From contig MU057332.1 in the NCBI GenBank assembly GCA_013239625.1, positions 6,103,001-6,167,000 on the forward strand: a DNA stretch of 64,000 bases, written 5' to 3'. The translations under genes and the position numbers were made by a program. The notes beneath the pieces are model-generated. The model was not told the origin of the DNA. It saw only the letters and a program-made list of their open reading frames with translations, and made no database searches. Each line of letters opens with the position of its first letter. The stretch's first letter is position 1. Origin of the DNA: Lama guanicoe. Taxonomy: Eukaryota. Of this stretch, positions 3,001-39,500 are shown piece by piece.

Positions 3001-6000
3001 GCAATTCTACTATTGGACATTTAATAATTAAAGGGAGAAGGAAAGGTATGAAACTCAGGCTGTAATTGGTAAAGAAGGAGCCGTCAGTCCTGAAAGACGG
3101 GAAAGGGTGATGTTCGGTCATTTTTGTATTTTACAATGATATTTTTGTCTGTCTCAGACACAGTTACAGAGTGGTCTTGTTTTTGTTTTGCCCCTTCATG
3201 GCCACAGAGTTACCTTGTCTGACTTTGGTGTTCTGTGACCTTGTTCGTGTTCATCAGGAGAGACCGTGGCCCAGCAGCTTGTGCTGGGGCGGCTCCCAAC
3301 TGAGAGCTGTCAGAGGCAGCTTTTTCCTCTCAAGCAACTGCTTCCAAACCTACGAGTCTGGAGCGGCTCCCATGCTCTGCTCCTTCCTTTGTGGACTGGC
3401 TTCTGTTTCCATTCCCCTCAGTCCTTCATTTCATCAACTCCTCACTCACCAGTTTGCTCNNNNNNNNNNNNNNNNNNNNNNNNNNNNNNNNNNNNNNNNN
3501 NNNNNNNNNNNNNNNNNNNNNNNNNNNNNNNNNNNNNNNNNNNNNNNNNNNNNNNNNNNNNNNNNNNNNNNNNNNNNNNNNNNNNNNNNNNNNNNNNNNN
3601 NNNNNNNNNNNNNNNNNNNNNNNNNNNNNNNNNNNNNNNNNNNNNNNNNNNNNNNGGAGTGTGGAGGTAGGTGGGCTGGCTTGACCCCAGCCTGGTTTTG
3701 GGGGAGTACCACTGTGAGGTTGGAAAGTGAGGATCCCCAAGTAGAATGTTATGTTCTGCTGCCTCCTCATTTCTCCAGCAGCATCCCTGTGTATCTGCAT
3801 ATCCTCAGATGGGTCCTGAGGACGGCACTAGAATTTTAGTGCTTATACATCTCAGGCTTCTTCCAGTGTGCCCCTGTCCATCCGTAGCTTTGCCTCATCC
3901 TAGGCTGGATGATCTTGGACAAGTTATTGAACCTGACCGAGCCTCATTTCTTCAGTGGTAAAATGATGTACCTGATTTATCTAATTGTTCTAAGAATTAA
4001 ATGAAAGAATGTAAATGGGAGGCATGGAAGAATGCCTGTCCACAGTAGGTGCTTGGTTAATGTGCTTTTCCATACTGATTTGAAGAGTATCTGGTAGTTA
4101 CAGCTTACTTCCTATGTAACTGACGCAGGGCTAAGCCTTGGCCAGCATCAAGCCCTTGCTCTCATTCCCTTCTATCTCCGTGGGCAGATAAGGGACTGCT
4201 CCTAACTGGAGATCTGACTTTGTTCCCTCTGCCCCTTCAGGTCTACCCCGAAGTGAAGGACAGTAACCAGGCCTGCCTGCCCCCCAGTTCCTTTATCACC
4301 TGTTCCTCTGACAACACTATCCGCCTGTGGAACACAGAGAGCTCTGGGGTGCATGGCTCCACCCTGCACCGAAACATCCTCAGCAACGTGAGCCACGGGG
4401 TCCCCGTCCACACCTAGTACCTGCATCCCCTTGCCTTTACACTTCCTTCTTAGGAACTGGGTCCCCAGCTCTTATTTGGCTGGCCTCTGTGAGCCAAGGG
4501 TTTATCTTGTCCAGCATTCCTCTCCCCTTGCCTCTTTTCTGGGTCAGGCCTGCCTTATCCACTTCTCCTCCTGACCTGCTCCGCTAGGACCTCATTAAGA
4601 TCATCTATGTGGATGGGAACACTCAGGCCCTGCTGGACACTGAGCTGCCTGGGGGAGACAAAGCTGATGGGTCCCTGATGGATCCCCGCGTGGGCATTCG
4701 TTCTGTGTGTATCAGCCCCAACGGACAGCATCTAGCTTCAGGGGACCGTGTGGGCACACTCAGGTAAGGCCAGGTCTGGAATGGGTACTGCCTGAGTCAC
4801 GTGGTGCAGGCTGGGAGAGTTAGGTCCCCGAGGACACAGCTTTTGAAAAGTTTGGCTCAAAGAGATTGGAAAAAAGATATTCCTATACAAGGGAAAGACA
4901 ATTACTTTATAATGAAGAAACCCAGCAGAAAGCATCTTAATCAAGTAACCAAGCTTAGCATCCTCACATCAACATCATGAAGCCCATAATATGATGCACT
5001 AAGAAGGACATAGCACTTCTTTTGTGATATTCTTGCCAAAAATGTGTAAACTCAGTCTAGTCATGAGAAAAGTCAGACAACTCAAATTAAGGTGCATATG
5101 ACAGGATGCCTGTGCTGATCAGTACTCTTGGTTATGAAAGGTAAGCAAAAGCTGAAGAACTGTTACAGATAGGGGACTAAAGAGAAATAACTCAATGCAG
5201 CTTGGACTCTGGATAGGATCCTGAGCCTAAAAGAAGGACATTGTGGAAAAAGTGGTAAAATTCAAGTAAAGCCTATGTAAATTTCCTGGTTCTGACAATT
5301 AAACTGTTATGTCAGATGTTAACATTAGGGAAAGCTGGGTAAGGGAAATAGGGAAATCCTCGGTACTCATTGCAACTTTTCTCTAACCTGAAGGTTGAAC
5401 AATAAAGATAATTTTTTAAAAAGGTCATAGGAGAAGATGTAGTAGAGGAAGCAAGGTGACTCTCTCCTCCTGCAGCCTTGCAGTGACCTCCTCCCTCCTC
5501 TCCTCATCTTTGCAGGGTGCACGAACTGCAGTCCCTAAATGAGATGCTGAGGGTGGAGGCCCATGACTCGGAAATTCTGTGCCTGGAGTACTCTAAGCCG
5601 GACACAGGTAAAGAGTGGATGCCCGGTACCTGGACCAGAAAAGCACAGGGCTTCCCCAGTCCTGCTAGTGCCACTTACGCCTATCCTGGCTGTTGTATGT
5701 GGGACTGAAAATCCTTGGAATAATTTGGTGTCTTCGCAGGTTTGGAGGAGGACAACTCCATCCCTGCTCCATGGTCCACTTGGCTTAGGGATGTGGGACT
5801 CAGTTCCTCTTTGCTGGGCCCATATAGAGGCCTGCTCTGGGCACTCATGGGCTGATGGAGTTCTTCCAATCTCAGGTCTGAAGCTGCTAGCGTCAGCCAG
5901 CCGGGACCGGCTGATCCATGTGTTAGATGCTGGACGGGAGTACAGCCTGCAGCAGACGCTGGACGAGCACTCATCCTCCATCACTGCTGTCAAGTTTGCA

Positions 6001-9000
6001 GGTAGGGGCAGGGCAGTTGAGATACATTCTGCCACCTACCACTGACATCTCCCCCGCCACCCACTGCCACCTGCCTCCCACCTCCATGAGAAGGGTGTGC
6101 CTGTCAAGGGGAGTGATGGACAGTGGCTGGCAGGCCTGGGGATGGAATATGGACTCTTAGTCCAGGGGACCTTGAGCAACCAGGCTGGCTGAGGATAGGG
6201 GGGAAGAAAAGAAAGCTTGGGTTTGGAGGGATGCATCCTGGTTTAGTTGGTAGTCCCAGCCATGTAGAGTAGCTCCACAGGGGGAAAGTATGGAGGGAAG
6301 CAGAGGAAAGGCTGGCCCCCTTGTGGTGAGAGCAGTGGGAACAGCTTGGCCCCCTTTCTCCACAGCCAGCGATGGGCAAGTCCGCATGATCAGCTGTGGA
6401 GCAGACAAGAGCATCTACTTCCGCACTGCACAGAAGGTGAGGTTGCTGGGCTTCCCTGAATGGGGCAGTGGGATTGGGGCTGGGGGGCAGAGGTCGCTAC
6501 TGTTCTCCTACCTAGGGTTACAAGGAGGGAAGGGAGGCAAAAACTGGGCTTTCGGGGCCTGGTGAGGCATTTGGGCATGGGGGTCTGCCCACATGCTCCA
6601 CCCCTGCAGTCTGGAGATGGCGTACAGTTTACACGGACACACCACGTGGTACGGAAGACGACCCTCTATGACATGGACGTGGAGCCCAGCTGGAAGTACA
6701 CAGCCATCGGCTGCCAGGATCGAAATATTCGGTGGGCATCCCCTTCTCAGACCATCCGACCCTGAGAGGGTCAGCTCTAAGCAGCTCAGTCCCTGGGTCT
6801 GTCTTTTTGTCCGGGACTCTGTGCCCCGCTGAGCCTGCAGAATAGGTACTTGGCTTCACCCAAGAGGTGGTAGCCCCTTTGGTGTTGGGGAGCAGCTTCC
6901 AGAGAGCACAGGGCTGGGAGTGAAGCTGGCGTTGCTACCACCCGAGGGTGCTTGATTGTGACCGCCGCCTCATGTGAGTGTCATCCTTTACAGGATCTTC
7001 AACATCAGCAGCGGGAAGCAGAAAAAGCTGTTTAAAGGGTCGCAGGGTGAGGATGGCACCCTGATTAAGGTAAGGGCCCAGCAGGCTGGGCAGTGGGCCA
7101 GAGAATGGGAGAACAGAGGGGTGCTAGGTGGAGAGGGACTGGTGCTCCCTGTCCTCTTCCAGCTGTGTGCCCCACTCCTCAGGTGCAGACAGACCCCTCA
7201 GGGATCTACATTGCTACCAGCTGTTCCGACAAGAACCTCTCCATTTTTGACTTCTCCTCAGGCGAGTGTGTGGCTACCATGTTTGGCCACTCAGGTGAGT
7301 GTAGCCCCAGCACTGGACCCCGGGAACTTTACTCTTCCTTCCTTTAGTTGCTTGGGTCCCAGCAGAGCTGTCTGTCCCTCCCCTTTAACCAGCCTTCCAT
7401 CTCCACCTGGCTGGGACTTCAGGGTGGCTCATCAGCCATATTCTTTGTTCTTCACAGAGATTGTCACTGGCATGAAATTTAGTAATGACTGCAAACATCT
7501 CATCTCTGTGTCAGGGGACAGGTGAGCAGAGGCCAGCTTCCCTGAGACACAGATTCTCCCTCTGTGCCACAAACAGACCCTGTCCCTCCCCTCTCTTCAC
7601 CTCAGTGATGTCTTGGAAAGTGGGGCTGAACAGGGATATTTCTTGGCTGGGTCTGACCTGACACTGGAGGGTGGCTCTGGTCTCCTTGTCAGCCCGTGGA
7701 GAAGGGGTACTAGTGGTGTTGCCTCCCCCAGAGTCCTGCCTTCCTCCTCCCTCATCCACCTCTGTGTCTCTACCCCAGCTGCATATTTGTGTGGCGCCTG
7801 AGCTCTGAGATGACCATCAGCATGAGGCAGCGTCTGGCTGAGCTGCGCCAGCGTCAGCGAGGGGGCAGTCAGCAAGGACCGTCCTCTCCCCAAAGGACTA
7901 CTGGGCCGAACCGGTGAGAACAGAGTGTGGGGTGTGGAAAAGCAGTGGGTGGACATCCAGATTGCTCGCTGTGATCTCACTGCTCACCCCACTCGCTCTG
8001 GACCTGCCACTCGGCAGCTTTGTTTCCCAGCACCTGTTTCTCACACAAAGACCCATGATGCTGGCCTCTTCCTCTCGCTGTTCTCCTCTCTCCGTGACCT
8101 TCCTTGTCTTGGACTTAGGCACGAGGCCCCATCGATGCTTTCTCCTGGACCTGCTCTCTCATCAGACAGTGACAAGGAGGGAGAAGACGAGGGCACTGAA
8201 GAAGAAGAACTTCCAGCTCTGCCCATCCTTGGTACCAAGAAAGAGCCAGGTCCGTGGAAGTGCAGTGTAGGGCCAGACACCAGTTGGTACAGTGGCTAGA
8301 TGTGCCCTTGCTGGGACTGTGGGGTGAGAACAGCATGAGCTGAGGGAACTGGAGCATCGCTGTGGCCTCTGGGCTTGCGTGTGGTGGGAACTCCAGGTTG
8401 GTTGGGCAGGAGACGCTCTCTGACTGCCTGTCTCTGTCTAGCCTTGGTGCACAGCCCAGCACTGCCCCGAAGCCTGTCCCACTGGGAGATGAGCCGGGTG
8501 AGTCACCATCATTAAAATGTTCTTCCGAGGTTACAAGAGGTAAAGGAGGGTGAAAGCAGGGCTCTCTGCACCTGGCGAGACATTTGGACACAGGGTCTGC
8601 CCACGTGCTCCACCCCTTGTGTCCAAGGGAGTTTGAGCCACTGGGCTGGTCCCAGGTTGTGGGTGACAGAGCTCAGGTGTTTCCTCCCTGTGACCAGGTA
8701 AAGTGGCCTGCAGGGGTCAGTCACCACTAGGGGAAGTACTCCACTTGTTTCGCTACCTGGGAGCCTGGGGGTAAATGTGAACAAAGGACGGGTTGAAGTG
8801 GGGAGTAGAAAAGGGGTCTGAGCAGAATGGTTAGAAGTAAATTTCAAGAAAATCAAAGGGCTAAAGAGCAGAAATCTGGAGAAACCATAGTTCTAAAGAC
8901 CCAGGATAGGAGGTAAGCCCAGAACTTCTAGAAGAGTTAGAGAGATGCCATAAGAGGACCAGTAACTGAGTGGTGACTTCAGGGTAGCGAGTGGTGGGGG

Positions 9001-12000: not shown

Positions 12001-14103
12001 GTGGAACACGGGGGTGTGCTAGAGGAAGGTGGGCTCATGTAGCCCTAGGTGTCACTGTGCTTGTCAGTGGGTGTCCCTTGGTGGGTATGTATAAGGCACA
12101 GCAGCTCCTAGGGAGATGAGCCTTAGAACCTGAGACGCTGCCTCACCCCCTGACCTGTGTGTGTGTCTCTGTCTCTGCAGATGAGGCCCCTCCACCAGGC
12201 CCATTGCTCTTACAGGAGATGGAGGTACAGAGGCACCTGCATTCCCTACCCCAGGCTGATAGTCGTCTGTCTCGGCCCCNNNNNNNNNNNNNNNNNNNNN
12301 NNNNNNNNNNNNNNNNNNNNNNNNNNNNNNNNNNNNNNNNNNNNNNNNNNNNNNNNNNNNNNNNNNNNNNNNNNNNNNNNNNNNNNNNNNNNNNNNNNNN
12401 NNNNNNNNNNNNNNNNNNNNNNNNNNNNNNNNNNNNNNNNNNNNNNNNNNNGCCACTGCCTGATCGTCCTACCCTGGCCACATTCTCACCTGGTACCAAG
12501 GGCCGGGCCCCTGGTGAAGCAGAACAGCCTGGTTCCTCAGTTGGCCTAGGAAAGGCTCACAATACATCTGAGAGGCCGGCCTGTTTTGGGGAGGTTGCCA
12601 CTCCCAAGCCTAGGACAGAGTGCCAGGCTCAGCCTGGGCCCAACAGCCCCCATGCTCAGCAACTGCCAGTTAGCAGCCTCCTCCGAGGCCTTGAGAACTT
12701 GCAGCCCCTACCCCTTGAGAAGACTCCCAGCCCCATGGAATACACCAAGCCAGGGGCAGCCGTGAGCCGGGACTCAGGTGTGCACAGCTACCCAGCTCTC
12801 ACCTCCTGCCCCATCCTCTCTCTCCTGTCTCTGTTGGCCACTCTCTGGCTCCATCCCATTTTTGTGTGTCCAGCCTCTGGCGTCTTTCGTCCTGTCTGTT
12901 CCTGTCTGAGTCCATAAGTCACACCCCTGATGGTGAGACACTCCTGCCAACCTTCATGAGCTCCCTGTGGCCCACTTGCCCCTTCAGTGCCTTTTAGCCC
13001 CTGGGACTGGGACTGGCCCTTTCCTCTTGACCTTGTTTTCTGTGTGGTGTTCGGAGGGTGTTGGGAAGGAAGGAGGCAAGAGGAAGGGACTGAGTGCAGG
13101 TGATGCTGGGGGTGGGGGTAGGCCTTTTTCACTCTGAGTGGCCCCTGGGTGGGGAGGACTGAAAGGGCAGCTTTGCCAGGCCTTACTGAGCTGTATCTGT
13201 CCTTCCCAGAACCAGCCATGAGCCTGGAGCAATGCGAACAACTTGTGGCAGAGCTCCAGGGCAGCGTGCGCCAGGCCGTGCGGCTCTACCACTTGGTACG
13301 TGTCAGGTACCCGCGGGCAGAAGGAAAAAGCATGTCGGTAGTGCGAGCTGAGTTTCCAGAACGTAATGATAAGGCTCTTGCATTGACGGGTGGGTGGTGC
13401 AATTAAGAACATTCTGAGGAGGCGAGTGGGTTAGAGGTCAGGGCTCTTAAACTGAGCACATTGGTCATTTCTGGCTAAGAGCTGGAGATATCCTCAGACA
13501 GGAGGGTGGGGTGTAGAGAGCCCACGTGTCCTAGTTTGCTCAGAACCATCCCAGCTTATGTCTGTTGTCTCAGTGTAATTATTATTCAAAAATGATTTGG
13601 CTATAGATGTAGGGGACAGTCCAGCAGAGGCCGAGAGTTGAAGAGGAATTGATGACAAGATGTAGATGGTGCCATAATCTGATGGTCACCCCCAGGGTCT
13701 GCCGCCATCCCCTGGCCTCTGGTCATACCTGCTGATCTTGGGAGCATGGAGCTCCCAGCCATGCCCACCAGGGCATGTGGCCCCTTCTTCCAGGGCAGGC
13801 TAGACCCAGTGGGGCCTCTCCCTTTTATGCAGTCCTCCGCTGTTCCTCCAGCTCATTTCTGGGCTCCTGTTGCAGGTGTCCAGCTGCAAGACACCCTCAG
13901 TGGAGCAAAGTCGCATCACCCAGCTCCTCAGAAACACCTTCTCTTCAGTGCGGCAGGAGCTTGACATCCTGGCTGGGGCCGCAGTGTCCAGCCCAGGCGG
14001 GAGCCCTGGGGCAGTGGGGGCTGAGCAGACGCAGGCCCTGCTAGAGCAATACTCAGAGCTGCTGCTTCGAGCCGTGGAGCGGCGCATGGAACGCAGACTC
14101 TGA
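8..14103 (+). CDS. MAPKBP1: MAPK-binding protein 1 (JNKBP1; WD40-repeat scaffold), 5'-partial, 28 coding exons
   Basis: Exons with phase-consistent splice sites: 8-65, 821-991, 1378-1515, 1773-1955, 2197-2214 (microexon), 2539-2699, ~3477(gap)-3666, 4241-4387, 4588-4763, 5516-5607, 5876-6001, 6366-6436, 6610-6731, 6994-7069, 7183-7294, 7458-7521, 7779-7913, 8119-8249, 8442-8497, 9578-9814, 10265-10431 (GC donor), 10667-10812, 10931-11128, 11294-11378, 11678-11961, 12181-12777 (contains gap), 13210-13295, 13876-14103 (TGA). WD40 peptides ([46 protein letters not shown]), acidic [10 protein letters not shown] stretch, C-terminal coiled coil ([20 protein letters not shown]). Confidence 0.97.
214..409. 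mobile_element. MER5A-like hAT-Charlie DNA transposon (MITE)
   Basis: Terminal inverted repeats CAGTGGTT...AACCACTG; internal AGAATCACCTGGAGGGCTTGTTAAA and TTTGCATTTCTAACAGGTTCCCAG typical of MER5A. Confidence 0.85.
520..625. mobile_element. MER5-family fragment
   Basis: AGTGGTTCTCAACCCTGGCTGC...AGAATCAC 5' end. Confidence 0.6.
2895..3260. mobile_element. Probable old ERV LTR fragment (family uncertain)
   Basis: Compositionally distinct T/G-rich block in an intron that resembles an antisense LTR; family not resolved. Confidence 0.3.
3460..3655. other. Assembly gap (196 N) covering most of a MAPKBP1 WD40 exon
   Basis: The sequence after the gap reads (T)GG AGT GTG GAG|gtaggt = ...WSVE, phase 0 into the next exon VYPEVKDS. 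Confidence 0.9.
3880..4070 (+). mobile_element. MIR SINE
   Basis: GATCTTGGACAAGTTATTGAACCTGACCGAGCCTCATTTCTTCAGTGGTAAAATG...AGAATTAAATGA MIR core. Confidence 0.75.
4860..5420 (+). mobile_element. Old L1 (L1MC/ME-like) 3' fragment
   Basis: A-rich intronic block with L1 3'UTR-like motifs (AGTCTAGTCATGAGAAAA...CTCAAATTAAGG; GATGTTAACATTAGGGAAAGCTGGG...TTGCAACTTTTCT), ending AATAAA plus A-rich tail. Confidence 0.6.
9303..9510 (+). mobile_element. MIR SINE
   Basis: CTCTGGAGCCAGACTGC...TGTGCTTCAGTTTTCCCATCTGTAAA...GTTGTGAGGATTAAATGAG...GTGCCTGGCACACAGTAA. Confidence 0.85.
12280..12451. other. Assembly gap (172 N) inside MAPKBP1 exon 12181-12777
   Basis: The reading frame is the same on both sides (ORF 12159..12917). 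Confidence 0.9.
13515..13692. mobile_element. MER94/MER81-like hAT-Blackjack element
   Basis: TGTCCTAGTTTGCTCAGAACCATCCCAGCTTATGTCTGTTGTCTCAGTGTAATTATT...ATGGTCACCC end. Confidence 0.45.
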
Positions 14104-26900: not shown

Positions 26901-29900
26901 CGCAGTAGAGATGGCCCCTTAGGTAAGACAGGGGCCTCTGTGGGGGCTCCCATTCCTAGCCTCTCTGCTCTGGTTCCTGTTTCCAGAGTCAGAGGGCAGA
27001 GTTCAGCTGGTGCTTCCTGGGTCCCGTGAAGGTCCGCAGGAGGCCTCGGTGGAAGCCGGCTCCTTCTGCTTCCATTGCCCGGCCTGCTGGGAGCAGGAGC
27101 TGAGTGTTTACCTGCAGGTAGTGCACGGCTTCCTCCTGGGTGCCGGAGCTGCAGGGCCCCTCCGCCTCCTTCCCAGCGCCTCCTGCCAGCCTGTCCCTCT
27201 GCTCACCCTGAGCCCCACCCCCCATCAGAGTCAGGCACCTGGGAAGTGTGGAGTCGACCTGTCTCCTGTCCCCCTTCCTATTGCTTTTCTGTCACTCCCA
27301 GGGGCCGTTGGTGAGGTCCCTGCTGGAACGGAGGGGTGGAGATTCTTAGGTCTTCTTTCATCCTCCCTGCAGGACGCCCCCCAAGAGCGTCTGAAGGTAC
27401 CCTTGAGGGCCCTGCCCTCTGGCCAAGTGGTGAGACTCGTCTTCCCTACGTCCCAGGTACTGGTCACCCAGAGAAAGAAAGACAGATGCACGGGCAAGGC
27501 TGGGCCCAGGCCCCAGGCCTTGAAGGGCTGGCCTGCTTCTCTAGCAGCTTCTGTCCTCAGGCCCTGACCTGGACAAGTGCTGGGCCAGACTCTGGGGAGG
27601 GGGTCCTCTGAGCATCCCTGCCCTCGGGCCTCAGACCTGGCCCCTGTGGAGATGGCTGGGGCCCAAGGGAACATGGGGAAGTCCTGGGACATGGCTTGGG
27701 TTGGGATGAGGGAACAGAGTGGCCAATCTTTGTGACTGGAGTGTTCATGGTTTTCAGGAGCCCCTGATGAGGGTGGAGCTGAAAAAAGAAGAAGGGTGAG
27801 ATGCTGGCTGGGCCCTGGGGAAGGTCACGGGGGACAGCAGCCAGGGCATTCAGCCTGGAGGAGCGAGGGGGATGGGCTGACTCCTAGCAGAGATGCTCAG
27901 GGGTTGCTCCCAGGGTGAGGCATGAGGTGTGGGAGCCTCAGCAGATGAAAGCTCTTTTTGTCAACTTTTCACATGCGTTTTTGAAGCAGTCAGAGGGGTG
28001 TGTGCCTCGTCCTGTGCCTGGCACTTAGGAGGCACTTGCTAAATGTTTGGCTGGAAGAACAGGTGAAGATGGGAGAGTGGTGAGAGGCAGACGGCAGGAA
28101 GCTGAGAGGCGCGCAGTCAAGGCCCTTCGGGAGGCAGTTGTGGACGGGCCTCTGCTAACCTTCAGGAGACAAGAGGAGCCGCCCACACGGGCCCTCCGCA
28201 TGCCCGGGAGGCTAGCTTCCCACCATGAAGTGGTGGGAGCCCTGTTCCCCACCCACTTTGAAGTCATTTTTGGGTGGGTGACACACAACAGCTGAGAGGT
28301 GGAAGTGGATCAATGGTGTTGGGTCCCATCCAGGGGCCTCTGGTCACCACTCCTGGTCCTGTGCACCTGTTGGCTGCATTGCCCAAGGGTGTCCCCACAA
28401 GGGTCTGGGTTCACCTTCTCCCATCATCCACACACGTCACACTTCAGTCAGGGCACAGGAGCAGGGCTGAGAGTTGGGGAGAGGAGGGAGAGAAGGATGG
28501 TGGTGGGCCTTTCCGGGGAGGCAGGCCCAGCTTCCCCTTCTCTGACGAGGCCGGGAGCTGCCTCACGGTCCCTTCCTTCCCACCCAGACCGAGGGAGCTG
28601 GCCGTGCGGCTGGGCTGTGAGCCCTGCGCCGAGGAGCGGGCCTTCCTGAGCAGGAGGCGGCAGGTGGTGGCCAGGGCCCTGAAGCAGGCCCTGCAGCTGG
28701 ATGGAGACCTGCAGGAGGATGAGGTCTGGGGACTGGGCTGGATTGGGTGGGCGTCCCCCAGTTCAGTGCTGGATGCTGGGACCGGTTGTTCCCTAACCGG
28801 ACCAGAGCCGGTGCCGAGCCAGGCTTGAGCCCTGCTCTGCTTCCTGCTCACGTGCTGTTGTCAGGAGCTTGACGGCATCAAATGCAGAGCGTTACATGAG
28901 GCACCTGCAGCTTTCAAGCTGCCTCGCTGGGCTAGCTTTTCTTCTCATTGTTTCTTGATTCCTGGCCTGGTCCAGATTTTGAGACTAGGCCCAGTCTGAT
29001 GGATCAGTGAGACATACAGCCTGAGGGCCACCGGCTGGTCCAGGGCAGTCCCTGGAGGTTTGGATCGACCTGGTGCATCTCCTAAGGAAATGACCTCTCC
29101 TTGCGAGAGGGAGAGGGGTGGCCATGTGGGGGACCTGGGGGCCCAGGGGCTTCAAGAAAGCAACCACCAAACTCCTCAGGGGCTGGAGGTGAGGAGATGA
29201 GGACTGGAACTTGTCCGTTCTTCCTGGAGTTCTTAAAACCAGACAGGCCTTACCCTCGCAAGGTTACTTTTGACTAGACCCTTCTTAGGATGCCTGACTA
29301 GAACTGGTCCCGAAAGCCGTGATCAGATCTTGACCAGCCTTAGCTATGGGTGAGCTGAGTCGCCTCTTGGCTTGCTACCTCCTCTCCTGTGGCATGGCCT
29401 TCCGTCTTCCTAAGGCCTCTCTGAGCCTGGCTGTTCTCTCTTCCAGATCCCAGTGGTAGCTGTTATGGCCACTGGTGGTGGAATCCGGGCCATGACCTCC
29501 CTGTATGGGCAGCTGGCCGGCCTGAAGGAGCTGGGCCTCTTGGATTGCATCTCCTACATCACAGGGGCCTCTGGCTCCACCTGGTGAGCTGGCAGCAGGT
29601 CGAGTGCTGGAACCTGGGGGTGGCTAATTGGGTCTTGGCAGGAGGGTGTGGTGGTATGGCTCTCCTAGACTCCACAGGCCTCCCTGACCAACTTGGAGGG
29701 CTGGGAGAATGCACGTGCCAGAGAGAAACGTGTTCAAGTGGACCCGGGCCCCTGGATGGTGCTTGTCAGACTCTTGTCCTAGGGTACAGAGCCCAAGGCC
29801 TATGACGGGGCCCTTGAGTGATGATCCCTCTGGCTTTGGCTTTTCCCAGGGCTTTGGCTAGCCTCTACGAGGACCCAGAGTGGTCTCAGAAGGACCTGGC

Positions 29901-33513: not shown

Positions 33514-36500
33514 TTACAGAGCTGGCAAGTCAGCTTGGTTGGGCTTCCCCAGGACTGCCGTGTCTGCTCCACTCAGGCCAGAGAGGAAGCCAGTTCGGGC
33601 TGGTGGCCTTGCGTCTGCAGGCCTAGCTCTGCTCCGGGGAGCAGACTCACAGGCCATGACGGCCATCACTCCTGTCCTCCTCACCCAGGGACTCAAAGGG
33701 CTGCTGCCTGTCTCATGGTAGGGGTGTCCAGACCTGGGGCCAGAGGAGCCAAGGAAAGAGGCCAGTGATAACTTTGTGACTTCAGCAAGCTGTGACATTG
33801 GTGGGGCCTGTCTTCTAACAGGGAACTGTCTATTCCAGAAGTTGGTCCTGAGGGGCCTGGTAGCTGAGTCTCCTGGTCCCCTCAAGGGTGTCCTCACTTG
33901 CAGCCCTCAGGTTTGGTGCCACAGGGTTTTTGCTTCGGGGCCCAACCTGTTGGGAAAATAGGGAGGTGGAGTGAATTTACGGCATAGCTGCTCCAGAATC
34001 TTCTAGTACTGGTGCCCTAAGCCTCCCTTGGAAAACCGCACCTGCTCCTACCATTGATGTGGGATGAGGACGCTGGGAGCTGAGAGGCACAAGTGGCCGT
34101 TACATGTGGGATGGATGGGAGATGACTGGGTCTCATGACCCCACTCACTGCATGTGTCTGCCCCGGGCATGTGGCTAGACTCTGAGCAGAATGAATGGCA
34201 GCCCTGATAACCTTAGAAGCCACTGTATCCAGGACAAGGCCTGTTCACGGAACAGCACATCATCTGAATCATAAATCGGAGCCTGTGGTCCTGCAGGAGC
34301 AGGTGGACAGTTACACCAGAGACCACAGCTGTGGCTGCGACCCGTTTTGATGTGAGTGCTCCCTCAGGTACGGGCCCGTGTGTGTGTCTCTGCGCACATC
34401 GGTGTCTGTATGTCTGCTGTGCGTGTGTGCCTCGGTGACATCCACTCCCGGCCTGTCTGGGACAGTAAGGCTCCCTTCCCCCTTGGAGCAGGGACCTGGT
34501 CCTTGGACTGGGGAAAGCACAGGAGGATGGAGGCAAGGGTGCAAGAGGGGTCTAGCTGTCCTGTCAGCAGTGCCCCATCTTGAAGAGGAAGGAGTGGGAG
34601 GAGGCCGAGGAGGGAGGTGTGTGGGGCCCCGGGCAGGCTTCCTGGCATGTGCCCTTGCCGTGGTCTGGCCTGGGTGGGACAGCCGCTAGGAGCCTGGTGC
34701 ACTTTCCTTTACGGGGCCAGCCACCTGCGGGAGCTCCTCGGGCTGCAGGTGGCTGTCAGTGCACACGGGCATCTCCCTCAGTGAGGAGGGCAGGGGACAG
34801 CCATGGAATCTGTGGGGAAAGGGAGCCTCAGGGTCCGGACTCCGTTGCCTCTGCTGAGAGTCGGGGTGGAGGTTGGCCCCACACCGTCCAGCGTAGGTCT
34901 GGGTCCTGGGACCTTGGGCTTAGGAGGGCAGCGTCTGTGCCTGTCATGGGGGCTCAGGACTCCCACCCACACACCTGGGTGCCCTACCTGAGCGGAGCGG
35001 CCGTGCTGGGGCCCCTCGCAGCAGCCTGCTCAGCCGGGAAGCCCAGGGGTCCGGCTCGAAGTTCTGGGCTCAGACTAGGGGCTGCAGAGCAAAGAAGAAC
35101 ACAGTCATCCTGGGCTGTATGCTCAGCTGCAGCCTCCCTGCCACGGCCTCAGTGTTCATGTCCTCCTCAACCTCATATGTTGAAATCCTAACCCCAAGGT
35201 GATGGTATTAGGAGGAGAGGCCTTCAGGAGGTGATCTGGTCCTGAGGGTGGAGCCCTTATAAAAGAGACCTCAGAGAGCAGCCTCCCCCCTTCCACCCTG
35301 CAAGGACACAGCAAGAAGGCGACATCTGCAGCCTGCAGGAGGGCACTTACCAGACACCCAGCCTGCCGGCGCCTTGTCCTTGGACTTCTCAACGTCCAGA
35401 ACTGTGAGAAATAAACATCTGTGGTCCTTAACCTACCCAGCCTGTGGTCTACTTGTTGCCTCAGCCCAAACAGACTAAGAGGCACCCAGAGGCACACACC
35501 AAGCCTCGCCCCCGATGAGGGGTGCAGCCCAGGCGGGGCACACAGGGCAGGCTCCCCCAGTGCACCCGGCCTCCTGGGAGACGGAATGCTGATGGTCCCG
35601 GAAAGGCTTAGCCTGGAGGAGATTCTAAAGAAACTCGGTTCCCTTTGGGATTCTGGAAGGACAGCCTCAGGGAGCTCCCGGGGGAACAGACTGACGCATA
35701 GAGCCAGCAACCCAGAGGGACTCCTGGGCGGGGCCCCTGAACACTCTCCACTTGGAGCCTGTCAGACCACAATGACAAGGGGCTTTTGGTCTAGGGGGTG
35801 CTGGGGTGCGTTCTGTGTTTCCCTCCTGGTAGAACTGGGCTTGGCTACTGTCTACAAGATACCCCCAAGGGAGGTGCATTCAGAGCTGTTTTAAGACTAG
35901 AAGGTTAGAAAAGGCCTCAGCCAGACAGAGCAGAGCCTGGGGAAGCCCACAAGGATCCTTGAAGGAAGGGCTCAGGGGAGGCAGACTCCAAAATGGGTGA
36001 AACAGAACTAGGAGGCAGCCAGGGGGTCGAGCCTGGCCTCACCTCTGCTACTAATTTAGCTTTGTGATCTTTAGTTAGTTGCTTACCCTCTCTGAGCCTT
36101 AAATTGAGAAAAGACAAGTCCTGTTTACCTCTCAGACTACAGAAGTACCAGATACGAAACTTCTGAGGATGCGTTAAACACCAGCAGCTTGGGGCCCAGG
36201 GAATCAAAGCCCCCTGCGCCCCCCAGGCTTCCCCTGGAGCCTACCTGCCATGCTGCTCAGGGCGTGATGCTGGCTTTCAGCCTGCCCTTCAGATGGTGCT
36301 GCAAACAGGGTCTCCATCCCAGACAGCCTGCCACCCAGACAGCCATAGGTCAAAGCCTGCCTCCCAGGCAGAGGACCCTGCCTCCAGCCCCTTCAGCTGC
36401 TCTGGGGAGGCCATGCCAGCTGAGTTAGCATGTCTGGGGGCCAGCATCTCTCTCCTGACTCGGCCCTCACCTTAAGGAGGTGTCTTTTCCATCATAGTGG

Positions 36501-39500
36501 TCCCTTGGCCTCTCACACTGGGCTTCTGTGAGGTCGAAGGAGGCTGTGGAAGCCACGTTCTGAGGAGAGATGAGAGGCAGGGGTTACCACGGCCATCCCT
36601 GCTTTCCCCTGTGGGGCCTCTGTCCTGTGCCCGTCCGCCCACTGCCTGGTACCTCTGCCACCGCCCTCTCATCCCAGGACAGGCTCCGGCAGCTGTCCCC
36701 CAAGGCCCCATGGCAGCTGTGCCAGCGGCTCAAGCTGGGCTGTGGAGAGAAGGCGGTGAGGCCACACCAGCCTTGTCAAGGCCTGTGTCTACAGAGGCTC
36801 CCAGGGCAGGTGCTAGGCTGGACCAAGGAGCCCACGGGGAAGCGGGAGCCAAGGAGCGACTTCCAGGGAACCCAGGAGGAGGAAGGGGGCCCACCCCGTC
36901 CTGGGTGAGGGCAGAAGCTGTGAAGTGGCCCCAGGGAGCCAGACTGTTGTGGCGGGGAGCGTGTCCACCACAACGCCAGGGTGCCAGGCCCTGTGCCTTC
37001 CGAGGCCTCCAGCGGTCCTGTGGAGGGAGCTGCAGCAGAAGGAATCTCTGGGCACTTACCTTCCTACCCCGCGGCAGGAGCTGCTACTTAAGCTCCTCCG
37101 AAGATCCCTCCGTGGTGGGGGTACCCTTTGCATCCTTACCCCTACGGCCCCGGCTGCGCGCTCCAGGGAGACAGTGGTGGCCAAGGTTATGTGCGGCCCA
37201 ACAGGGACGTCTGGCTGCAGGTCCCTTGTCCCAGCCAGCTGTGCTCCAGGCCACCAGCTTCCTGAGAAACTCTGCTGGAGGGAGGCTGGCCCACTGCCAA
37301 CTCTCTCGGGCTGCAGCCCCTTCACCTGTTGCAGCAGCTTCTGGTCCATCTTGGGGAGAGGAGAAGGGGGGCAGGTCAGGGTTCCCGTGGTCTCTGTGTC
37401 CCAGCCCCTCCTCCCCACGGCGCTCCCACCCAGAGGGAGCCCCTGCCTCCTCGTTTTTCAGCTCTTCCTGCTTTGGCTCAAGAGACTTCCCTCTCGTCCC
37501 AGGCCACAGGGTGCCCTAGCTCACCAGGAGGTGGGGGTGACAGGACACCGTAGCTGGCAAGGGAAGAGCAGCGCTCTCCTGAAGGGTCAGGTGCGGGCTC
37601 AGTGCCTGCGGATAAGCCAACTCTCGGGCTAAGACCAGGATCGCTGCCACCATCGGTCCCCAGGCCCCTGCCTCCTAGGACACCCAGCTTCTGCTCACCC
37701 TCACCTTCCTCTGAAGCTGGGCAAACCTCTCTTCCTGGGCAGCCAGCAGCTTTTCAAAGTCCTGGTGTCTGCAGAGCAGCAACTCCACGTCTGCCACTGA
37801 GTGCTGGGGAGAAGGCAGCTAGGGTGAGGCCCGGCTCCTGGGGGCACAGAGAGCCTTCCCCTCACCCTCCACAGCCTGGCCCAGGGGTCAGTGAGCAGAG
37901 GAGCCATGGGATCCGCCCTTGGTTGTGGCTGTCAGTGCAGCTGGCTAAGGGGCAGGGCCCCAGCTCACCCCGAAGTTGGGGTCCAGCAGGAGGCCCTCCC
38001 GGGAGGCCAGCCAGGCCTCGGCCTGATCCATCCCCTGCCACAGCTTCCGCAGATGCCAGCTCTCCTCACAGCGTCCCTGGCGCAGGACCCAGGCCTCCTC
38101 GAGCGCCTGCAGCCGCCCTTCCAGCTCCTGCAGACACTGGGTCACCTGGTGGGAGGGCGCCGTGGGTGGGATGCTCAGCCAGAGCGCCCGTTAGGGCGGG
38201 GCTAGAGTGCCCAGGAGAGGTGTCGGGGAAGACCCTGAGGCCTGGACCGTCCTCTTCTCTGCCCTCTCTCCCCACCTCTTTCCTGGCTTTCCCCTTCTGC
38301 TGGGGGTTCCGAAGCCCTGGGTAACTGGGCTCTGTGCCCAGCTCAGCCCCAGACTCATCTCAGTGCTCATACTTCCAAGGACATGAAGTGGCTATTGTCC
38401 ACCAGCTGCTGCCCTTCCTGCCGTACATTCTGGGCTTGAAGGCAGTGCTCCTTGATGTCTCGCCCCAGCTCCTCATGCTGCTCCAGGAGCTGCTCAGCTC
38501 TAGTCACATCCCCAGCCAGCTCCTCTGAAGACACCATCACCTGCTTCTCCTGAGCCCATGCTCTGTGGGCAGGGAGTGGAAGCTGCTATCAGGGCCAGGA
38601 GCCCTGTGGGGTGGGGAGGGGGGTGGAGCAGGGCAGGAGCTGCACAAGGGGCTGAGGACTGTAGCTCCCCAGAGAGCTGGGGTGACCCTGCAGGGGAGAG
38701 CTAAGCCAACAGCCGGGAAGGACCCACTTACAGCAGTTCCCGACAGCGTCCGAGGAAGGCGTGGCCCTGGGCAGCCTGTTCCAGCTGCTGACCCCGCTCC
38801 TGGGCCTTCACATTCAGGCTGGCCCAGGCTTTCTGCACCTCAGCCAGCTGCTTGGCCAGGCCCTCCTGAGCCTCGGGGTGTAGCTGGCCCAGCCGGCAGG
38901 CCTCAGTTGGCACCTGTGCCACCTCCTTCTCCACGGCTGTCAGTTCCCTCTGCCGCCAGAACACATGATCAGGCCTCACCCCCCGGCACCTGATGCCTGC
39001 TCCTCTTCAGGGAGCACCCAGTCCCTCTGGGGAGCTGGTTCTGCTTCCAGACTGCTCCACAACCTGGGAGGCAGGCCCTCCCGTCCCCCCGCCTTCAGGG
39101 AGGGGCTGAGACGGGCAGGCCGTGGCATGTGGATCCTCACCTCCAGGCATCTGTGCTGTTGCTGCAGGGTCTGCACCGACGACAGGCTGTGGCCACAGGC
39201 ATCTCCTGCCATCAGGCTGGCCTTCTCCTGCATCCAGCCCCGGAGCTCGGCTGCCACCTGCTCAAAGCCGCGGACCTCCCGGGCTGCAGCCAGGTTCTGG
39301 GAGAGAAGGGAGGGCCTGCTCTGGCCACGGTCCTCTCTTCCTGGAGACATGGCCTCCTGGGCTACCTCCTTTTATTTTTTCCTTATTTTTCAAAATTGTT
39401 TACTTATTTTTAAATTAAAGTATAGTTGGTGTACAATATTATATAGGTTATAGGTGTACAATGTAGTAGTTTACAATTTATAAAGGTTATACTCCATTTA

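Follow-up and report, generated by a model that had tools for sequence, protein, structure and literature searches.

The subject of this analysis is SPTBN5, the gene for beta-V spectrin, as found in the guanaco (Lama guanicoe) on the minus strand of a 64,000-nucleotide (nt) stretch of contig MU057332.1 (assembly GCA_013239625.1, positions 6,103,001 to 6,167,000), here called the window. In camelids, this gene has probably lost the use of the exon for the first strand of its C-terminal PH domain: a short intron would have collapsed to 5 nt, the mini-exon behind it would have died, and splicing would run from the old donor ahead of the remnant past the dead mini-exon to the next acceptor, at 36739. 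The C-terminal PH domain is itself lost, in that no PH signature is left in the predicted camelid protein. Positions are those of the window and refer to the minus strand unless marked otherwise.

The linker exon, its spacer, and the relic mini-exon

The anatomy of the region can be read directly. The conserved first part of the linker exon (37215 to 37349) begins in phase 0 behind the acceptor AAG|, reads MDQKLLQQ..GTRDLQ, aligns to all SPTBN5 models, and is identical to Camelus at 41 of 45 residues. Right after GTRDLQ comes CCAGAC, and hence GT is absent at 37214; 80 nt (37214-37135) remain open in frame 1, terminating in ..GGG|GTAAG. Of these, 75 nt (37140 to 37214, PDVPVG..AAGAVG; 21 of 25 residues identical to Camelus) make up a spacer that reads as a coding extension of the linker exon, and the last five, GTAAG (37135 to 37139), form the core of a donor, GGG|GTAAGG (37140|37139), and appear to be an intron remnant. 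Immediately behind them lies the relic PH strand 1 mini-exon (37060 to 37134; 75 nt here, 72 nt in relatives), which reads DAKGTPTTEGSSEELK*QLLPRGRK in a frame that differs from that of the spacer, with a TAG at 37086-37084, and which ends in a relic donor, AAG|GTAAGT (37060|37059; intron side 37051 to 37059, with GTAAGT at 37059-37054). A 210-nt linker exon ending at donor 37140|37139 joins PH exon A (36653 to 36739; 87 nt, phase 0-0, PSLSRW..AVAE, 28 of 29 residues identical to Camelus) in frame, whereas a 290-nt linker exon ending at donor 37060 shifts the frame onto a TGA at 36732-36730. The initial annotation of this locus had described the TAG, the 80-nt open spacer, the two donors, and this frame arithmetic, and every coordinate is borne out on the minus strand; the human peptide that it quoted likewise agrees with an ape model (gibbon, P0044), which reads ..RGPQ|DAKGTPTMEGSLEFKQ.. 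at this junction. A weak in-frame donor, GGG|GTAGGA, is also present at 37068, and tandem AGs (CACAG and CCCAG, 5 nt apart) occur at 36734-36741.

Comparison with orthologues places the donor at 37140 at an ancestral position. We aligned the C-termini of 27 SPTBN5 models (gibbon, colobus, and capuchin serving as the primate comparison), and the DAKG..GGRQ mini-exon aligns with 24 of them. Models of primates, felid, seal, bear, pig, reindeer, and mouse lemur have a donor soon behind ..RDLQ that is joined to DAKG, which leaves the spacer non-coding. Those of Hipposideros, Rousettus, hippo, and five ruminants have a coding spacer, an exon end that aligns with GGG|GTAAGG, and then DAKG or DVKG. 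Those of fox, dog, stoat, tree-shrew, and sloth code through the spacer and run straight into DAKG, a hidden intron being invisible in protein. The Camelus models, too, have a coding spacer. The size of the intron that relatives carry between the aligned donor and the mini-exon (63-180 nt) comes from genomic read-through open reading frames (ORFs) found in Logan contigs, a Rousettus fragment, and a pangolin (P0001, P0003, P0005, P0007, P0009, P0014, P0150, and P0012), as well as from rhino and pangolin models; in the rhino and one pangolin model, the intron is read through in frame. In the read-through ORFs, the donor position is followed by 21 to ~60 codons of non-conserved, intron-derived text, which in three of them ends in ..ILHFQ|D, equivalent to a pyrimidine-rich acceptor before DAKG. 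The residue right after the aligned position is Val (GTN, compatible with a GT donor) in P0001, P0003, P0005, P0007, P0008, and P0014, and Ile in the pangolin ORF P0009.

Together, the aligned exon ends and the intron in relatives indicate that the donor at 37140 is ancestral in position rather than cryptic, and that an intron of 63-180 nt would have been reduced to GTAAG in the window. This alters the picture drawn by the initial annotation, which had described 37140 as a nearby in-frame donor; it is not a new one but sits where bat, hippo, and ruminant models end the linker exon. The spacer, coding in these relatives, is removed by splicing only in models of primates, felid, seal, bear, pig, and reindeer. 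The exchange of exon and intron that had been proposed thus holds against primates only, and the change specific to camelids would be the collapse of the intron to 5 nt. The possibility that the fox model P0006 contains a single uninterrupted exon here, with a 1-nt deletion in the window, was dropped, given that the read-through ORFs and the bat, hippo, and ruminant models show an intron at this place; P0004, considered as a transcript-derived ORF, was rejected as such, being a Rhinolophus gene model.

The mini-exon itself is damaged both inside and out. Only 35% of the 20 nt upstream of it are pyrimidines, less than at any of the gene's 46 acceptors, where the mean is 71% and the minimum 45%. 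Besides the TAG, it carries a 3-nt insertion (one extra codon) and S/S for the hydrophobic F/I/S-L of strand 1, and it is left out of both available Camelus models.

The succession of events that we propose starts from an ancestral Laurasiatherian linker exon, which would have extended from MEQKLL.. as far as a donor immediately behind ..SGA(V/L)(R/G) and been followed by the 63-180 nt intron and then by the 72-nt mini-exon (DAKG..MEGxLELKQQLLPGxRQ) for PH strand 1. In camelids, the body of this intron would have been deleted, leaving GTAAG, such that the old donor GGG|GTAAGG now adjoins the mini-exon. Having neither polypyrimidine tract nor branch region, the mini-exon would no longer be recognizable as an exon, and it would later have gained its TAG, its 3-nt insertion, and its radical replacements. 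Productive mRNA would be spliced from donor 37140 to the next acceptor, 36739, as in both Camelus RefSeq models, and would encode a protein that keeps the rod and has a tail of ~190 residues in which a PH domain is predicted not to fold. Some transcripts are probably diverted to the relic donor AAG|GTAAGT (37060|37059); in their shifted frame they would run into the TGA at 36732-36730 and become substrates of nonsense-mediated mRNA decay (NMD). Such diversion reads as a by-product rather than as a demonstrated control device. Deletion as the mechanism, its sharing with Camelus, and the use of the old donor in vivo are what we infer from the sequence comparisons above.

The open reading path and the PH domain at the C-terminus

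The junction that skips the stop, which the initial annotation had worked out to be in frame, is indeed so and recurs in two gene models. NCBI models of C. ferus (XP_032336758.1, P0037, 3249 amino acids [aa]) and C. bactrianus (XP_074222690.1, P0135, 3823 aa) both read ..AAGAVG|PSLSR.., equivalent to 37140>36739 with the DAKG segment skipped; the latter is full-length and uninterrupted, and the former begins about 590 residues in. These RefSeq models share with the window a common exon chain that includes 37140>36739, an 81-nt cassette, and the tail exons, but they belong to another genus (~92.5% aa identity), are automated, and are silent on the relic exon, its stop, and the relic donor.

The open path through the guanaco gene is likewise directly observed. 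With the camel model as guide, a script that sought GT/GC-AG pairs keeping both frame and length resolved ~47 junctions between 63071 and 33897, with 0 stops and 0 length changes; ~2,600 codons are open within the window, and stops in the tblastn alignments are confined to read-through introns. Because all remaining exons of the window read open when the camel-type path is followed, an old pseudogene is unlikely, and the gene does not appear to be a plain pseudogene: the features that define a unitary pseudogene (inactivating lesions spread over the exons and no open path) are not found here.

In the gibbon model, the Pfam PH match (33.6 bits) begins at MEGSLEFKQ, residue 3536, which identifies the mini-exon as PH strand 1 and agrees with the initial description of the skipped segment as the first PH strand. 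This strand is not translatable in the window, given the TAG and the lack of acceptor context. The exons behind it persist as PH exon A, PH exon B (36471 to 36559; 89 nt, NVASTASFDL.., 28 of 29 residues identical to Camelus), and PH exon C (36246 to 36327; (R)LSGMETLFAAPSEGQAESQHH..), the last with Q at the position of the hallmark PH tryptophan. In the PH helix, the window reads ..AESQHH.. and Camelus ..AESRHC.., as compared with ..AESWWR.. in gibbon; the tryptophan is kept in seals, ruminants, rhino, and primates, while the window has Q in its place, Camelus R, fox P, and Rhinolophus C. The camel model P0037 gave no match to a PH domain (PF00169 or PF15410), even at E<=1, nor did a Pfam scan of the window's PH exon A alone, which is a very short piece.

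Gene models of other mammals hint at a wider erosion of this domain, although the pattern comes from automated models and is to be taken as a lead rather than a result. An equivalent of exon A is missing, with the mini-exon kept, from five ruminant models and from hippo and Rousettus models, and the Glossophaga and Rhinolophus models have neither an exon A equivalent nor the strand 1 exon (models concerned: P0040, P0046, P0054, P0055, P0057, P0060, P0062, P0041, P0134, and P0004). Different PH exons thus appear to have been lost independently in Laurasiatherian lineages, with camelids lacking the strand 1 exon, ruminants, hippo, and Rousettus lacking exon A, and Rhinolophus and Glossophaga lacking both. 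Precomputed Pfam PH matches among the listed models are confined to bird, squirrel, primate, and rhino, with none in carnivore, bat, artiodactyl, lemur, or xenarthran models. In P0150 and P0153 (hippo-like genomic ORFs from Logan), the strand 1 exon after ..ILHFQ|DAK.. reads METFGAY.., out of register with MEGFLELKQQ, which suggests a frameshift in the strand 1 exon of that species too. No cetacean SPTBN5 model is found among the at least 120 matches listed.

Alternative explanations and the competing donors

Several observations weigh against intron collapse followed by skipping of the mini-exon. That a deletion took place, how large it was, and that Camelus has it too are deduced from proteins and read-through ORFs; the Camelus junction is taken from gene models made automatically, a procedure that favors open frames; and a camelid transcript ORF for the region was not found among the protein search matches. 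Consensus strength and acceptor proximity both favor the relic donor over the donor at 37140. Moreover, the relic mini-exon is ~67% identical to rhino, versus 52-59% for the retained PH exons (counted on alignment rows); since it is no more diverged than they are, it could have died recently, or the PH region as a whole could be evolving almost neutrally.

The question of donor strength, which the initial annotation had proposed to settle by scoring both sites, was addressed with an approximate matrix based on human frequency tables in the literature, taking 43 of the gene's own donors for comparison. GGG|GTAAGG at 37140|37139 scores 8.1 bits, above 24 of these 43 donors, and AAG|GTAAGT at 37060|37059 scores 12.5 bits, above all 43. 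At these strengths, competition between the two donors is plausible, and the frameshifted product meets the positional rule for NMD: its TGA lies upstream of later junctions at 36653, 36471, 36246, ~35349, ~34987, and ~34719, satisfying the 50-55-nt requirement. The relic donor might have been kept as a decoy that sends a large share of transcripts to NMD, the balance between a productive (37140) and a frameshifting (37060) donor setting beta-V spectrin output, possibly by tissue. Both donors are strong, at least six further junctions follow the stop, and RNA runs contain 13-19% of the sampled words of 36200-38200, from which the locus may be transcribed. We regard such a switch as doubtful all the same. 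The relic donor is a leftover of the ancestral constitutive donor and bears no mark of a selected regulatory element, and the probability that its 9-mer stayed unchanged by chance over ~20 million years is, by our estimate, roughly 0.8. Known cases of NMD-coupled alternative 5' splice sites resemble the present one in having tandem donors (here 80 nt apart), one of which gives an early stop before later junctions, but they come with conserved decoy elements and measured isoform ratios, whereas the resemblance here is one of sequence.

The remaining explanations fare less well. Were the whole gene undergoing recent or incipient pseudogenization, with C-terminal lesions coming first and the Camelus-type path being an annotation convenience, one could account for a TAG and a frameshift within one exon, the lost hallmark tryptophan and absent PH Pfam signal, the fast evolution (rod and tail both at ~92-93% aa identity to Camelus), and the normal hearing of Spnb5 knockout mice reported in bioRxiv 10.1101/2021.02.01.427491. 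This is nevertheless improbable in light of the ~2,600 codons in ~47 exons that are open with canonical splice sites and of the uninterrupted C. bactrianus model of 3823 aa with the same junction. If the loss predates the split between camelid tribes, neutral decay at a per-lineage divergence of ~2-3% would, by our estimate, have put several stops into the 7.8 kb, along with tens of indels. In the tail, where an early stop would trigger NMD, maintenance of the frame may be the main constraint. Quite improbable, too, is a main mRNA made by another in-frame route, of which two can be drawn. Along the first, the 37060 donor would be joined to the second AG (36736-36735; exon from 36734), which cancels the 5 extra bases, and the relic would be translated stop-free in frame 1; this frame is open through 37349-37060, the tandem AGs are available, and the junction reads AG + C, then TTG AGC... 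Along the second, donor 37140 would be joined to exon B at 36559: skipping the 87-nt exon A stays in frame, and in the Rhinolophus ferrumequinum model P0004, ..SGAVR| is followed directly by the equivalent of exon B. Splicing normally uses the first AG behind a polypyrimidine tract, however, and in both Camelus models the acceptor is 36739 and exon A is retained. Finally, the TAG or the 5-nt remnant could be errors of sequencing or assembly in a GC-rich region (62.7% in 36001-38000). That possibility is very remote, given that 14 DNA runs from 7 studies, under five organism labels, contain 85-95% of the sampled words of 36200-38200, that two Camelus annotations from independent assemblies also lack the mini-exon, and that three separate defects (remnant, TAG, and extra codon) occur together.

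Read as a collapsed intron and a bypassed mini-exon, the event is, from these comparisons, one more lineage-specific exon loss, and as such of a known kind. It shares with other exon losses an exon that is coding in 24 other models, a lost acceptor context, a stop inside, and neighbors joined in frame; it differs in its apparent cause, which would be the near-complete deletion of a short upstream intron, fusing a live donor to the exon, rather than a point mutation in a splice site. No account of an SPTBN5 exon lost in camelids emerged from the literature searched. Beta spectrin isoforms without a PH domain are exemplified by erythroid beta-I sigma-1, which likewise retains the rod without a working C-terminal PH domain. 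There, however, the gene goes on encoding the domain and makes such isoforms through regulated alternative 3' exons, whereas in camelid SPTBN5 the coding capacity would be gone.

At this locus, then, an essential-looking domain would have been lost from a very large gene that stays alive, through the collapse of an intron, the death of a mini-exon, and an old donor that reaches the next exon in frame. For annotation, the proposed history explains why a conserved exon is skipped in camelid SPTBN5 models, and it carries a warning that the strong relic donor may give unproductive transcripts. The pattern across lineages suggests that beta-V spectrin can do without its PH domain in several groups of mammals, which fits the mild phenotype of knockout mice described in bioRxiv 10.1101/2021.02.01.427491.

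Gene identity, neighbors, and other features

The minus-strand gene is the SPTBN5 orthologue, in syntenic position. Its closest named protein matches are SPTBN5, with at least 120 named SPTBN5 models listed in a word search that used as query the C-terminal region of the full-length fox model (P0006), itself a match to a related ORF among protein representatives. Alignment (tblastn) with the fox and camel proteins gives colinear cover from 63071 down to 33897, and Pfam Spectrin repeats are detected in translations of the upstream exons; a rod exon lies at ~38145-37969. Two adjacent genes converge on the 3' end of SPTBN5 from the plus strand, as seen from an ORF with a cPLA2 C2 domain (27010-27564) and an ORF of the MABP1/WDR62 type with WD40 repeats (6974-7522); these match the gene order on the PLA2G4B/MAPKBP1 side of the human locus. 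The 5' end of the gene lies outside the window. The fox model carries CH domains (PF00307) at its N-terminus, and the C. bactrianus model shares N-terminal text with it; the domain layout of SPTBN5 is given in PMC9248767.

SPTBN5 evolves fast along its whole length, as judged by the window versus Camelus. Overall aa identity is ~92.5% and is alike in rod and tail (about 92-93%): single rod exons are 81-100% identical, the linker exon matches C. ferus at 62 of 70 residues, and the tail as a whole at 260 of 281, about equal to the rod. The Camelus-type C-terminal tail exons (33897 to 35401) lie at ~35401-35349, 35085-34987, 34817-34719, and 33946-33897, with 16/17, 31/33, 32/33, and 14/16 residues identical, respectively. 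Read in the manner of the fox model, the terminal exon (34668-34817) contains a stop (..APGS*RLS..); the Camelus-type model exits this exon at ~34719 and ends in the final exon at 33946-33897.

The in-frame cassette exon of 81 nt (37525 to 37605, ALSPH..HPHLL) is situated between the last exon of the rod and the linker exon; it is stop-free, has the acceptor ATCCGCAG| and the donor CTG|GTGAGC, and is identical to Camelus at 26 of 27 residues. Both Camelus models contain it, and none of the other 26 mammal models in the alignment does. Runs of N occupy 3460-3655 (196 bases) and 12280-12451 (172 bases) of the window.

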